From positions 3,286,001 to 3,350,000 of the forward strand of contig CM035362.1 of NCBI GenBank assembly GCA_020137815.1: a stretch of DNA of 64,000 bases, in the 5' to 3' direction. Made by a program: the position numbers and the translations under genes. Under the pieces are notes generated by a model. It was not told where the DNA came from. It searched no databases and saw only the letters and a program-made list of their open reading frames with translations. This document shows positions 875 through 36,810 of the stretch, one piece after another. Source of the stretch: Hormiphora californensis (Eukaryota > Animalia > Ctenophora). Positions within the stretch are counted from its first letter, which is position 1, and every line of letters starts with the position of its first letter.

Positions 875-3437
875 ATGGATGTAACGACAGTGGACTCCCA
901 TGATGAACTATCACGGGCCGAACATTTAGCTGAGCACGACCATTGGTACATTCCAATAATAATCTTTTGAAAACCCTCTTTAATCTATGATATAGTGGAG
1001 TCTCGACTTACCGGACCTCGTTATATATAACCGTGCGAAAACCCTTACCCTGAACCCTAAGACCCTAGAAACCCAGGTTTGACTGTATCAGGTACAATAT
1101 TGGTATTATGTGATATTTCAGGATATATATAGCAGCATCACTGGTTGGCAGTTTCCTGGGTACCTTTGGTGCAGGGATGATCATTATAACTAGTCTGAAA
1201 CTCAGGGCACCCACCATGGTCAACAAGATCATCAGAAATATCTCCATATTTGGTAATAACATCTCCATATTTGGTAATAACATCTCCATATTTGGTAATA
1301 ATATCTCCATATTTGGTAATAAGATCTCCGCATTTTGTAATTTACATTAATTGATGGTGTATTGTCTAAGGGGCGTGACGTGCCAAAGTCCAAGGACTTG
1401 GAACATTGAGTTGTTTTAGGTTGTTTTGTCCTATATCTGTGATTATTACCTTTCTACTTTTTATTCCAAAATGATGCCCTAATTTCCCCGACAGATATGT
1501 TCATCTCACTTCCCATTCTTGTCCTAAACGTTCTCCACCTTGAACTACATCTATCGCACAGCGAAGGCCACAAGAGGTAAATTGCCAGCTAAATTCAAAA
1601 GTTTGCTATATTAATATTTGACGAATAACCGAATGCTCATTAGTCAACCAATCATTCAATTATAATAATTGTCCATTATGTCGGCAGCGCCTGGTGGATG
1701 GAATCACATTCCTGCAAAATCCAATCCTACATCATCACAACCGCCGCTATGCTCTCATTCCTGTGGACCTGTGACTTTATCCCAACACGTGTTCCTTCTG
1801 TTGGCATACGGGATAAAAGGGGCACACCTTGTATATGTGGCAATTTACCCTCTCTCCATCATACCCCTGGCGGTAAATGGAGTCGGATATGCTTATAATG
1901 TGTTAGGTCAAGGTTAGTAGCTGCATTGATTTGTACATACACACATCACATGATATCTTATTATATACTAATTCTTCAATTGGATCAAGCCATTTCATTA
2001 AAGATTTGCTCACTACAAATTACTTTGTTTTGTTCTGTTCTAACATTTGTGCAAAACATGGTCGAGCACTTAGGCAAGGAAAACTTTGTTGCAACACGCC
2101 ATTTCATTATGTTTGATCACTTATACACAGATTTCCATTACAGATTTCCGGTTTGATATAGCTGAATTGGAAGGTAACAGCAGTAGTGGACATTACCACT
2201 CAATTAGTTGGTGCTGGATTAACGTTACCCAGGACGAGAGCAACAAATCCTGGATGGAGAAAAAGTGTCAAGCAACAGTTTGGGAGGGAAAAGGCTGGGA
2301 ATTACTTGCTTATCTTGGTTAGTTTGGGCGGGTATAATTTCGGCCTACTTGAATAATATTCAATGAATATGGTATTGGTCTATAAACCTAACACCTCCCA
2401 CGCAAGCAGTCTGGGTCCGAATGTTTCAACGGACAGTCGGGTTCCGACAAGCAGCTGCCTCAAATTAAAACCTGCAGGTGTTTTGATATATTCCACTTTG
2501 ACCTACATTCGCCTGCGGAGAATTCAAAACACCGACTATGATGATGAGGAGCTGATGGAAAGCAATGCTTTGGAAAGAAGTGCCCTACTGACTAACACAT
2601 CCCGCCAAAATATCAACTCCTCTGTTCGGGGTTACTTGCAATTGTGGCTCATACCACACTCTGTTACCCCTCCCTTAAGGGGCCCTTGTCTGCCGGTAAG
2701 GGCCCTTGCCGGCGCGACAAGAGTGTGAGGTGTCTTCGATACCAAGCTCATACCACACTCTGTGAGGGTTCGGCAGATCAAGGCCGGTAACTACTAACTT
2801 TGATAATTTCACCAACCAACAATGTGTGACCGAGATCTAAACCGAGATTCCTAATCTCAGTTTTCACTGGAGTACTTTTGCTAGAATAATTCCACACAAA
2901 ACCATATTATGATGATATAATTTCAGGGGCGAATCTTAAGATCATAAAGCTTCTCGCGATACCAGCAGTTTTTGTTTTCTTTCGGATTTGGGGAACCATC
3001 TATAGGTGAGGATTAAAATAAAGTTAATCTGTAAGTGATTCATCAAAGTTTGATGAATCTCTTACAGTTTTTTAAACTTATTATTAATTATCAATTATAT
3101 ACTAAAGCTGTTCTAATTAATAACAATTATGCCTGATCCCTGCACAATCCTAGCCGATTTAAAAATGGAAGATTCGGATCGATCTGATTTGCCATTTTAT
3201 TTCCGCAGGTTTGCGTGTAACTGCGGTTCTGATGAAGAGGGAAGCATAGCAGTTCGAACCTGCCAAAACAACTTTTTGTTTTTCATGCTGTGTCTGTTTG
3301 ACCCCATGCAGGGGATGGCCAACTTCCTATTGTACTGGAAATCTCTCAGACAGGAAGACAGCTGGACTGCTGAGTCGCCAACTTGCTGCATTATTCCTAA
3401 AATTAGAGGTAACAATACAATACAAGGAGGTGCATGA
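875..3437 (+). CDS. GPR157: GPR157-like (cAMP-receptor-like) 7TM GPCR, 8 exons
   Basis: Phase-consistent GT-AG exons 875-945, 1122-1252, 1495-1576, 1688-1912, 2144-2317, 2478-2630, 2927-3005, 3209-3437. Motifs CKIQ..SFLWT, WCWI..GKGWELLAY, KLLAIPAVFVFFRIWGT and QGMANFLLY fit the GPR157 family. One extra base at 1769-1770. The C-terminus may splice further (donor near 3408). Confidence 0.85.
1240..1340 (+). repeat. 21-bp tandem repeat (ATCTCCATATTTG|GTAATAAC) x~4.7 spanning the exon 2 donor
   Basis: Directly visible; the first copy contains the donor used at 1252/1253. Confidence 0.9.
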
Positions 3438-32000: not shown

Positions 32001-34504
32001 TCCTCCGTGCTGATGTACACCAACAGCAGGTCTCACTTCTCTTCCTTTAGTAAAATTAACGATCTCACTTCTCTCTCTTTTAAGTAAAAGTAACGATCTC
32101 ACTTCTCTCTCTTTAGTAAAAGTAACAATCTCACCTTTGAACCTCATTTCAGTGGTTTGACCTCGGGGAATGCCCATTAGTAGATACGGAAAAGGCAGAG
32201 TGTTGCTTTCTCAATGGCTGGTTGTTTGTCCTTGGAAATAAGGGAGATTTACTGCGATATTCCCCTTACGTAAAGGTAAAATTAACTTTTTCATTAATCT
32301 GCAAATAACGATAAAGCTGCCTTGTTCGATCATCCTTCCCCCCACCCCACGAGTTTGAACAAAACAAAAATCTGCAAAGTAATTCATTTTTCATCGATCA
32401 AAAGGTGAGATTCCTAAAAAAAGCATCCCTGATCCCTTTTCAGGTTTGGGAGGAATGTCGAAGACTGCCTTATGTTTTAACACGCAGTCACGTGGTTACC
32501 AGTACTTCGGATATGCTTTTTGTCGTTGGAGGAGATCATGGTTCAGGTTGGTTACCATGGTTCTGTTAGTCAATACCATGGTTACCAGTAAGAGGTTTTG
32601 TTAGTCAATACCATGGTTACCAGTAAGAGGTTTTGTTAGTCAATACAATGGTTACCATGGTTACCAGAATTGTACTTTCCTCAGGTAGGTCAGTCATGAG
32701 ATACGACTGTGAAAGTGACACGTGGCACACGTGTCAGCCCTTGCCGCGATTTTGTGATCGCATCAGTGGAACCTCCATAGCTGATATTCTATACATAGGT
32801 AAACTTTTCAACACTACTTTAAACAAATTAATTTGAGCACTGATGAGCGGAATGTTACATTCTGTGAAACATATGTTTGCGTAAATCTCCGTGTTTCATT
32901 TCTACTATAAAAGTAGGAGATCGTTACTTTTACTAATGATCATAAAAGAGAGATCGTTACTTTTACTAATAATCATAAAAGAGAGATCGTTACTTTTACT
33001 AATGATCACAAAAGAGAGATCGTTACTTTTACTAATGCTCGCAAAATTGAGAGATCGTTACAATGTTACATGTACTAATGGTCATAAAAGAGATTTATAA
33101 TAAGAGTAAAAGTGAGATATTTAAATTAACTAGAGTGATAGCTAAACATCTCAATTTTGCTACAGTGGGTCAGAGTGCGATGGAGGAAGTGATTGTCCAA
33201 CACTACAACTCTCTTACCTCTGGTCCCTGGGTTACTCTTGATGAGGACTCAAAAGGGCCCTTTGATGTCCCAATCTCTGCTTGTGCTGACGAGAAAATGA
33301 TTTATATTCTTGGTGGGCAGACACCCAATGACACCAAGTAAGTCGTCACTGGCAGACACCAAATGACACCAAGTAAGTCGTCACTGACAGACACCCAATG
33401 ACACCAAGTAAGTCGTCACTGGCAGACACCAAATGACACCAAGTAAGTCGTCACTGACAGACACCAAATGACACCAAGTAAGTCGTTACTGAACAATATT
33501 TTTTGCCAATGCTGGGTAGTCACGTATTTTGGGTGTGACCAGGATGATGCAGCGCTGGGAACAAGACACAGCTAGGGGGGCAAGTAGGGGTCATTAGGCT
33601 TTTCTTCGCGAAGTTACCCCAACTACGAATTGGCCGGTTAAGTGGTTATTCCATTACCAAGCCGGGGCTAGGGTTTGTAAAAACAGCGATACTGACGATA
33701 GGATCAATAATTTAAATAGAATCATCATAAAACCCCTTTTAGTCCAGATGACGATGGACCTCTGTGAGTTGAACCCCCCATGTGTAACCGTGTAACGTGA
33801 TTTTTTATTTCATCATCCACCATTTTCCTTCTGGGAATGTTTCTTCAAAAGTTTGCGTAGATTTTGTCGGTGCCACTCTGTTTTCTGTGAAAATCGTCCA
33901 ATTTGATCTCGATCGGTTTCCGGACACTAACTTTGCTTCCGATTAAAATCATTATATCCTAACCACTAACGTAGTAGATCAAATGAAATGGTACACTGTA
34001 TTCTTGTTTTAATCCGTGTCTTACTTTCCCTTTCAGTCCTGATGAAGCATCCATCTTGTTCCGATTCAATCCCAGTTTTGAGAATGCGACCGTTCTCCAT
34101 CCACCTCCGACTTGCTGCATAAGTAAGTATAGATTTCCACATTATATGCAGGAAATAATACGATAAAATTCGTCGTAATATTTAAATTGCTTCCCCAGAG
34201 ATTATATGAGTAGTGAGTACATATTACTGCGGTTTAATAGTTATGATTTTTAGAACTGCACCCAACAACATGGCTAGTTTCTCGTGTTGCCCCTTTTCCC
34301 AACTTAAAACATTTCTCTCCTATAAACATTTCAGACGGTAAAGTAGTGGCCGCTGGAGACTTGGTTTACGGAGTGGGGGGAATGGAAAAGGGGCAAGTTC
34401 TGGACACCATCAACGCTTACAGCCCACGATCCGATACGTGGAAGACGTTGTCCTGGAAATACCCGTTCCATACAAAGAGATATGCGGTGTGCAAACACGC
34501 TTAA
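29040..34504 (+). CDS. BTB-BACK-Kelch (KLHL-like) protein; first exon unresolved
   Basis: 12 phase-consistent exons: LCDVTL..CHSVVLASQSHYF (BTB), FLYSGSL, LNIQSESEV..KW (BACK), kelch blades LFVVGG, RYDCESDTW, IYILGG, VYGVGG..AYSPRSDTW; stop TAA 34502-34504. Confidence 0.88.
30439..31574. mobile_element. ~1.1-kb non-autonomous TIR element in a KLHL intron
   Basis: ATAT-GGTCGTGTTTCATATTGATTGGTCGTT...AACGACCAATCAATATGAAACACGACC-ATAT; internal TTACTCATATTGTGCGG sub-repeats. Confidence 0.85.
32801..32886 (+). ncRNA. Spliced-leader exon copy fused to a minimal type I hammerhead ribozyme
   Basis: AAACTTTTCAACACTACTTTAAACAAATTAATTTGAG (32801-32837), then CA-CTGATGA-GCGGAATG-TTA-CATTCTGT-GAAAC-ATAT-GTT-TGCGTAAAT: core boxes, 8-bp stem II, palindromic mini stem III, stem I ATTTGAGCA/TGCGTAAAT. 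Confidence 0.75.
33316..33492 (+). repeat. 35-bp tandem repeat x5 spanning a KLHL splice donor
   Basis: CAGACACC(C/A)AATGACACCAA|GTAAGTCGTCACTG repeated; GTAAGT at 33338, 33373, 33408, 33443, 33478. Confidence 0.95.
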
Positions 34505-36710: not shown

Positions 36711-36810
36711 AAAGTTTGAAACTTGAAACAGTTTCAAACTTTTCAACACTACTTTAAACAAATTAATTTGATTTGATAATGACGTTAAACGTCGAAATGA
36801 ATCTCCGAGT
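36711..36810 (+). ncRNA. Second SL exon copy with a 5' inverted duplication, followed by a degenerate hammerhead-like motif
   Basis: AGTTTCAAACTTTTCAACACTACTTTAAACAAATTAATTTGA (36730-36771), then TTGATAAT-GACGT-TAA-ACGTC-GAAA. 36711-36723 is the reverse complement of 36730-36742. Confidence 0.65.

Follow-up and report, generated by a model that had tools for sequence, protein, structure and literature searches.

Penelope-like retroelements carry minimal hammerhead ribozymes in their pseudo-long terminal repeats (pseudo-LTRs; Cervera & de la Pena 2014, PMC4209133). These motifs combine CUGAUGA and GAAA boxes with a helix II of 7-8 bp, a short open helix I and a 1-bp helix III whose palindromic loop implies action as a dimer, and many divergent families can be found in a single genome. 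In Drosophila virilis Penelope, the 3′ end of an intron maps to the 5′ end of helix I, and the spliced and unspliced RNAs carry different hammerheads (PMC4209133). Here we describe an insertion that shares these features, including a 3′ splice site at the 5′ end of helix I, in the ctenophore Hormiphora californensis. It occupies positions 32801..32909 (109 bp) of a 64,000-nt stretch of contig CM035362.1 (assembly GCA_020137815.1, positions 3,286,001 to 3,350,000), hereafter the window, in which all features discussed below lie on the + strand. We give a probability of roughly 80% to the reading that it is a young retro-insertion of a chimeric RNA of ~107 nt, in which the host spliced leader (SL) was trans-spliced onto a Penelope-type hammerhead end. 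Compared to the described Penelope-like hammerheads, the splicing thus appears to be SL trans-splicing instead of cis-splicing, and the spliced product appears to have been copied back into the genome. Furthermore, the family to which the insertion belongs (family A) is without the G10.1-C11.1 pair, and a flanking open reading frame (ORF) for a reverse transcriptase (RT)/GIY-YIG protein was not found.

Two other systems resemble this locus. Metazoan non-LTR retrozymes are likewise small, non-coding, hammerhead-bearing and thought to depend on Penelope-like enzymes (Cervera & de la Pena 2020, PMC7229834; Li et al. 2026, 10.64898/2026.07.22.740005). They differ in being tandem units of 170-400 nt that yield circular RNA after double cleavage (PMC7229834), whereas the tandem hammerhead units by which a retrozyme is recognized were not found here: the window element stands alone, comprises 109 bp with a single hammerhead and a 5′ SL, and derives from an RNA that appears to have been linear and uncleaved. 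In dinoflagellate retrogenes, relict SLs were fixed in DNA by reverse transcription of trans-spliced RNA, and their AG end can be reused as an acceptor (PMC5585692, PMC12014239). Those leaders belong to host mRNAs of protists. In the animal studied here, the RNAs come from mobile elements, and a ribozyme motif adjoins the acceptor.

Penelope-like minimal hammerheads, ctenophore SL trans-splicing and dinoflagellate relict leaders are all known; what is new is their combination. A full-text literature search returned no paper meaningfully combining SLs with hammerheads or Penelope-like elements, and hammerheads in ctenophores only in passing mentions; a chaetognath genome paper likewise contained no pertinent information. 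SLACS, CRE and NeSL-1 are retrotransposons that target SL RNA genes. They too link retroelements with the SL, but they insert into SL genes, whereas here the SL lies within the transposed RNA and the target is unrelated. The finding connects two RNA-processing systems, SL trans-splicing and the Penelope-like hammerhead, and the presence of a 3′ splice site adjoining helix I in both Drosophila Penelope and the ctenophore suggests that this arrangement is old and conserved among such elements.

The limits of the insertion were defined by comparing the filled with the empty allele. The preliminary description of the window had ended the element at 32886, which is too short, as the insertion runs on to 32907-32909. 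The first 37 nt (32801..32837, AAACTTTTCAACACTACTTTAAACAAATTAATTTGAG) are SL exon, followed across the junction at 32837/32838 by CA (32838..32839), which comparison with unspliced copies identifies as the first two bases on the acceptor side and which also form part of the 5′ strand of helix I. Next come the core box CUGAUGA (C3-A9, 32840..32846) and an 8-bp helix II (32847..32865) made of GCGGAAUG (32847-54) and CAUUCUGU (32858-65) around the loop UUA (TTA in the DNA). Two of its 8 bp are G.U pairs, namely the third pair and the closing pair G10.1.U11.1, and sister copies carry compensatory changes. The core continues (32866..32877) with GAAA (32866-69), C (32870), ATAT (32871-74) and GTT (32875-77), giving a minimal helix III C-AUAU-G-U and U17 as in the Penelope-like architecture (PMC4209133); helix III is a perfect 8-nt palindrome (ACAUAUGU). 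Cleavage is predicted between 32877 and 32878. All of the hammerhead parts named in the preliminary description (CTGATGA, 8-bp stem II, GAAAC, ATAT, GTT and stem I) are found at the positions it gave.

Downstream of the predicted cleavage site lies a 30-nt tail module (32878..32907) common to all family A copies. It starts with the 3′ strand of helix I (UGCGUAAAU, TGCGTAAAT in DNA letters, 32878-86) and runs to ...CAUUUCUACUA, so that the element ends as ...CATTTCTACTA at 32907 (3′ end ...GUGUUUCAUUUCUAC). This end is presumably the start point of reverse transcription. The two last bases of the insertion, TA (32908..32909), are foreign to both the empty allele and the family consensus. If helix I forms, its 5′ strand is AUUUGAGCA (32831..32839), of which 7 of the 9 bases come from the SL.

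The leader part is identical to the 3′ 37 nt (nt 8-44) of the published 44-nt H. californensis SL (GAGTTTCAAACTTTTCAACACTACTTTAAACAAATTAATTTGAG), so that the 37-mer is part of a leader known from mRNA 5′ ends; at least 56% of Iso-Seq reads carry this SL (PMC8527503). The preliminary description had called it a Pleurobrachia-type SL; the match to the Hormiphora SL stands, and support for the Pleurobrachia label comes from the Hormiphora paper. In RNA-labelled contigs of the same species (run X17), the leader stretch is joined to many differing sequences at 32837-32845. True SL RNA genes look different from the window copy. At two loci (L058 and L059), the leader is followed by GTAAGCUGAG with a GTAAG donor, two stem-loops, an Sm-like CCUUUUGG site and a terminal hairpin, and the SL RNA folds with z=-3.4. 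Since the window leader is followed by CA and not by GU, the window copy is not an SL RNA gene, in agreement with the preliminary description, and we also rejected a variant SL gene on junction anatomy.

Such SL RNA genes account for only 2 of 30 sampled loci in which the SL precedes GT. Most SL+GT copies among loci L031-L060 (e.g. L050:2201-3025, L049:1526-3025, L033 and L036) are 5′ ends of repeats that are LINE-like (long interspersed nuclear element) or bear other ORFs, which points to full-length retrotransposon mRNAs that were SL-trans-spliced and re-integrated. The genome paper counted 718 leader copies, taking them for leader loci (PMC8527503). Many of the hundreds of genomic 'spliced-leader loci' reported for this ctenophore are 5′ ends of retro-copied mobile-element RNAs and not SL genes. 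An unusual cargo for an SL-tagged repeat was seen at L043:1558-3024 and L055, where a repeated ORF with 2OG-Fe(II) oxygenase (AlkB-like) and GDSL-lipase-like domains follows a 5′-truncated leader.

The window copy is a young, still polymorphic retro-insertion. Contigs of the sequenced individual (X1) and of an independent marine sample (X6) contain the empty-site allele ...ACATAG^GTAAAGTAGG (a caret marks the junction), with the sequence ...ACATAGGTAAAGTAGGAGAG... in both. In the public contigs compared over 32300-33500, the form skipping the element reads ...ACATAG^GTAAAGTAGGAGAG..., joining 32803 to 32917 with GTAGGA between; the marine sample carries this empty form plus further single-nucleotide polymorphisms. 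Depth in X1 is 17.8 at the empty joint, compared to 10.1 for a contig that spans the 3′ junction of the filled allele and ~25 in the flanks, from which we conclude that the reference animal is heterozygous for the insertion. L002, which lies on a different chromosome, matches the window copy with 100% identity over 107 nt. Sister copies of family A have target duplications of 14 bp (L003, L005 and L006), 10 bp (L004), 9 bp (L009) and 6 bp (L007) directly outside the leader and the CTAC end, and a member of another family has one of 10 bp (L025). The empty-site allele in both samples, together with the 6-14-bp target duplications in sister copies, bears out the proposal of the preliminary description that the sequence is a reverse-transcribed copy.

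To place the insertion in its genomic context, the whole assembly (110,691,255 bp, 45 contigs) was searched. The last 21 nt of the SL have 568 genomic copies, and in 91 (16%) of these CTGATGA follows within 0-10 nt, compared to ~0.4 expected by chance and 0 in a reversed-pattern control. The hammerhead enrichment downstream of genomic SL copies that the preliminary description had looked to is thus found. The 91 sites comprise at least 12 junction types. A descriptor of the hammerhead layout, run over 247 kb on both strands, gave 25 matches, every one of which lay at an SL junction or in a relative of family A; there were none elsewhere. We distinguish six hammerhead families, A to F, for which copies of family F, starts at the cleavage site and GIY-YIG loci are known from short pattern matches and coordinates only. 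CUGAUGA and GAAA boxes are common to all six. Helix II is unrelated in sequence between families and always paired, over 4-9 bp, and helix III is always short and palindromic or nearly so (for example AGUACU in family C and the imperfect palindrome ACCGU in families D and F). Families A and C share a homologous motif downstream. Helix II also shows covariation: in L005 and L020, a G-C pair is replaced by A-U and a G.U pair elsewhere in the helix also by A-U, and in L015 the helix is longer.

Comparison between copies of the same family provides the evidence for trans-splicing. Family A has ~20 copies in the genome. Five carry the leader as ...TTTGAG^CACTGATGAG (RNA: ...UUUGAG^CACUGAUGAG), and three extend upstream as ...AACCCTAACATTCT(G/T)CATAG^CACTGATGAG (RNA: CATAG^CACUGAUGAG). 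The unspliced form reads CATAG^CACTGATGAG in L008, L010 and L014 and AAATAG^CACTG in L009, and two unspliced copies have at least 260 nt of non-coding sequence upstream in common. The leader thus stands in place of all sequence upstream of a pyrimidine-rich YAG.

The same exchange is found in family F, the commonest family and unrelated to A. Its unspliced genomic form is ...TTATAG^CTGATGA. In RNA letters, ~10 copies read UUCUAUUUAUAG^CUGAUGA (unspliced) and ~40 copies AAUUAAUUUGAG^CUGAUGA (with the SL), corresponding in the DNA to TTCTATTTATAG^CTGATGATGACG... and AATTAATTTGAG^CTGATGATGACG..., respectively. In both families, the junction falls at the exact 3′ end of the SL exon, and the unspliced genomic copies have YAG at that point, so that the parent copies sought by the preliminary description, with a genomic AG in place of the SL, are present. 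Family D has two junctions 3 nt apart, GAG^CAGCCTGATGA and GAG^CCTGATGA (RNA: GAG^CAGCCUGAUGA and GAG^CCUGAUGA), which is the pattern expected of tandem NAG (NAGNAG-like) acceptors.

Finally, in one family A copy (L007), a second leader, ...ACTACAACGTAAAACTATTTATTGAG, is joined at the identical base. This second leader has at least 182 genomic copies preceding many different sequences and therefore represents a second SL type. Taken together, the exact SL exon end, the AG in unspliced copies and the second leader at the same nucleotide uphold the use of host trans-splicing proposed in the preliminary description, and these genomic comparisons support the view that the leader was joined to family A RNA in this way. 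Two pieces resembling the 3′ end of the leader, ...CATTTGAG-TATTTGAG, stand before the hammerhead in L006 (~1445-1500 in the oriented locus, upstream at G000:C3:7275338). Possibly, these short pieces are leader relicts left by successive rounds of trans-splicing and retroposition, of the kind seen in dinoflagellates.

Based on these observations, we propose the following course of events. The source would be family A, a non-coding element of at least 330 nt whose last ~70 nt comprise the minimal type I hammerhead motif followed by the 30-nt 3′ tail. In its transcript, a 3′ splice site (..CAUUCUKCAUAG^) would directly precede helix I of the hammerhead. Trans-splicing of the host SL RNA to this site would remove all upstream sequence and leave a capped SL-CA-hammerhead-tail RNA, the cap following from what an SL is. 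The predicted sequence after the SL is CACUGAUGAGCGG in family A and CUGAUGAUGACG in family F, with an end near CUACUA. This RNA would stay uncleaved, keeping the 3′ end where reverse transcription of the element starts, and target-primed reverse transcription, most likely by a Penelope-like RT/GIY-YIG protein, would have placed it at position +3 of a Kelch-gene intron. The terminal AG of the SL may let inserted copies be trans-spliced again. Overall, the data support the notion that host trans-splicing can shape the RNAs that Penelope-type elements copy back into the genome.

Several observations weigh against this reading. The target duplication of the window copy is not clear (0-3 bp), an ambiguity that results from an AAA run at both edges. 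No RNA contig of an SL-hammerhead RNA was found in X17, a small RNA-labelled run available as contigs, which covers the SL only. There is no RT/GIY-YIG ORF within 3.5 kb of any listed SL-hammerhead site, no RT or GIY-YIG ORF within 1.5 kb of the SL-hammerhead copies and no Penelope-like ORF in the window. Many SL copies head LINE-like elements, with an APE endonuclease in L050 and RVT_1 in L049. As for the ribozyme, the closing pair of helix II is G.U in family A (or, differently drawn, an unpaired G, a C-G pair and an unpaired U) and U.U in family B. Moreover, Rfam hammerhead models (cmscan) have no match at the gathering threshold in the window or at E<=10 for the site and five loci, so that the Infernal type I scoring suggested in the preliminary description gave nothing.

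We weighed three alternatives, which concern the origin of the leader, the enzyme and the ribozyme, respectively. The leader could have been acquired independently of trans-splicing if the RT, on reaching the 5′ end of the element RNA, had switched to SL RNA as its template, in the manner of U6-L1 chimeras. SL RNA is abundant, template jumping is common among such enzymes and the fold-back copies described below show jumps at RNA 5′ ends. Template switching is nevertheless extremely improbable given that the junction is always at the exact 3′ end of the SL exon and that the element side always begins directly after a genomic AG, in two unrelated families. The NAGNAG-type alternatives and the unspliced copies reaching far upstream of the junction also argue against it, and neither SL intron bases nor non-AG junctions were found among the junctions listed. 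We rejected it on this junction anatomy. Trans-splicing being retained, the next question is which enzyme copied the product. Among the 91 SL-hammerhead sites there are 18 head-to-head (-,+) pairs, whose axis coincides with the 5′ end of the SL; the window copy itself is solitary, with no inverted partner. The 3′ ends of family A are ragged (CTAC, CTACTA, CTACTAAT or beyond), and a ~35-nt 'tail' occurs in direct orientation 3′ of L002 and reverse-complemented 5′ of L005 and L006. These three features correspond to those published for Penelope-like elements, namely inverted 5′-truncated partners, 30-40-bp tails and internal RT initiation downstream of the hammerhead (PMC8557442, PMC11167929). 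The genome also contains 66 GIY-YIG matches, with open frames of up to 1039 aa, 3.3-kb tandems and inverted pairs. Judging from these hallmarks, the partner enzyme is most likely the RT/GIY-YIG protein of Penelope-like elements. The Penelope/retrozyme link made in the preliminary description is therefore backed by the head-to-head copies, ragged 3′ ends and tails, though not by any linked RT/GIY-YIG ORF. The same SL-trans-spliced RNA could alternatively have been copied by a LINE RT, as a passenger resembling a short interspersed nuclear element. The many LINE copies that begin with the SL imply that LINE machinery also retroposes SL-tagged RNAs and make SL-tagged retro-copies a wider feature of this genome, and priming of the LINE type would likewise be compatible with target duplications of 6-14 bp. 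We find this passenger route improbable, since the 3′ tail of family A is confined to its ~20 copies with no longer partner sharing it, no poly(A) or microsatellite end is present, and the head-to-head copies, the inverse tails and the ragged internal initiation are typical of Penelope-like elements.

Whether the hammerhead is a working ribozyme is the third point. The motif has the minimal type I layout with palindromic helix III described for Penelope-like elements (PMC4209133), as the preliminary description had noted. The conserved core (C3 U4 G5 A6 N7 G8 A9, G12 A13 A14 A15.1, U16.1 and an H17 that is not G) is intact, the same boxes are present in families B-F, and in families C, D, E and F an additional U/A, as in the canonical form, follows A9 ahead of a G...C closing pair. 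In family A, three copies start precisely at TGCGTAAATC, the first base downstream of the predicted cut, and one of these is flanked on both sides by CTAGAA. Of 57 family F copies, four start precisely at CCGTATTATC and a further two within 1-2 nt of it, with no other truncation points in the 11 nt visible upstream. The simplest reading of these starts suggests that self-cleaved 3′ products are also retro-copied and hence that the motif may cleave in vivo; a stop of the RT at the same base may be another source. If the former applies, such copies are a genomic record of in vivo ribozyme activity, which is hard to get for weak dimer-dependent motifs. The window copy spans the predicted cleavage site and so derives from an uncleaved template, as does every SL-bearing copy, in agreement with unprocessed RNA being the main substrate in vitro (PMC11167929). 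The role in processing that the preliminary description assigned to the ribozyme is therefore supported in part, by the other copies of two families that start at the predicted cleavage site and not by the SL-bearing copies. The alternative is that the hammerhead-like motif is not a working ribozyme and has been retained as a signal for the RT, through its structure or through protein binding, the match to the core being historical. Such a view could account for the missing Rfam match (minimal hammerheads are known to need relaxed descriptors; PMC4209133), for a minimum free energy fold no more stable than shuffles (z=+0.33), for the G.U and U.U at 10.1-11.1 in families A and B and for a helix I that is weak in most families. 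It is also in line with the SL-bearing copies all deriving from uncleaved RNA and with Penelope-like minimal hammerheads cleaving poorly in vitro, cleavage being dispensable for insertion (PMC4209133, PMC11167929). Cofolding gave no information on the helix III dimer, as trivial intermolecular pairing of helix II dominated. On the other side stand the three copies of family A and the four to six of family F whose 5′ ends coincide with the predicted cleavage site, with no other truncation in the 11 nt inspected, and the core boxes kept across at least six families while helix II differs wholly yet always pairs. We thus regard a purely structural role as a serious possibility, though a rather doubtful one.

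With the acceptor located directly at the 5′ border of helix I, splicing swaps the 5′ strand of this helix, and we compared the pairing before and after. In family A, AUUUGAG of the SL plus CA pairs with UGCGUAAAU at 8 of 9 positions in register, compared to 3 in the unspliced form. Two subfamilies of family C reach 8 bp with the SL, one via a mismatch and the other via a bulge. In family F, the SL pairs at 2 of 5 positions and the unspliced AUAG at 4 of 5, and families B, D and E have no convincing helix I pairing with the SL. We therefore rejected a general rule by which the SL would supply helix I. It fits families A and C only, and the motif that these two share downstream means that they are not independent tests. 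One could speculate that SL trans-splicing acts as a ribozyme switch, which would complete an 8-bp helix I in families A and C and destroy a 4-bp helix in family F and in this manner decide between self-cutting and a capped template. Under such a switch, a promoter-less 70-nt module in a transcribed intron could relaunch indefinitely, since the terminal AG of the SL re-creates the acceptor in each copy. We consider this switch unlikely.

The inverted pairs have a further property. The pair at L017:1453-1547 and other head-to-head pairs form near-perfect hairpins of at least ~90 nt, which Rfam microRNA (miRNA) precursor models match at E ~1e-9; around these SL fold-backs, Rfam returned only such spurious miRNA-like matches. 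If transcribed, the head-to-head SL-hammerhead hairpins could be sources of small RNAs.

The insertion lies in a host gene encoding Kelch repeats. The exon at 32685..32798 (frame ...GRSVMRYDCESDTWHTCQPLPRFCDRISGTSIADILYI) translates as a Kelch repeat, ...CESDTWHTCQPLPRFCDRISGTSIADILYI (ending ...ADILYI), and matches Pfam Kelch_1 with E=1e-4 and 22.2 bits (cut-off 20.1). Its final base, G at 32798, is the first base of the split codon G^TG, and the frame resumes at 33166 as (V)GGQSAMEEV... (VGGQS...). The splice donor GT (32799..32800), supported by the sequence and by comparison with the empty allele, is directly 5′ of the insertion, which therefore starts at position +3 of the intron and has the same orientation as the host gene. 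The preliminary description had placed the 37-mer 2 nt past a KLHL exon (AG^GT-...), and this is indeed its position. The sole change to the donor is from GTAAAG in the empty allele to GTAAAC in the filled allele. A heterozygous insertion at +3 of a donor represents a natural experiment, as its effect on host splicing can be tested allele by allele.

Beginning at the 3′ edge of the insertion, the intron contains a minisatellite (32910-33095) of ~5.5 units of ~32 nt (AAAAGAGAGATCGTTACTTTTACTAATGATCAT), and the empty allele has a 2-nt AG indel in this region. The preceding intron has GGTTACCATGG-type repeats at 32540-32670.

The window also contains a second, independent SL-bearing insertion at 36711..36810 (also listed as C13:3322761). 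It consists of an inverted SL stub, GTTTC, a leader with a changed last base (...TTTGAT) and a degenerate core resembling family F, with TTGATAA in place of CTGATGA, the stem GACG/CGTC and GAAA. The second SL type (...AAACTTTCATCAACTACAACGTAAAACTATTTATTGAG; L007 ~1490-1540, minus strand of G000:C11:4148340-4148435; at least 182 sites) fronts many different repeat families and adjoins a hammerhead in only ~1 of the 100 sites listed.

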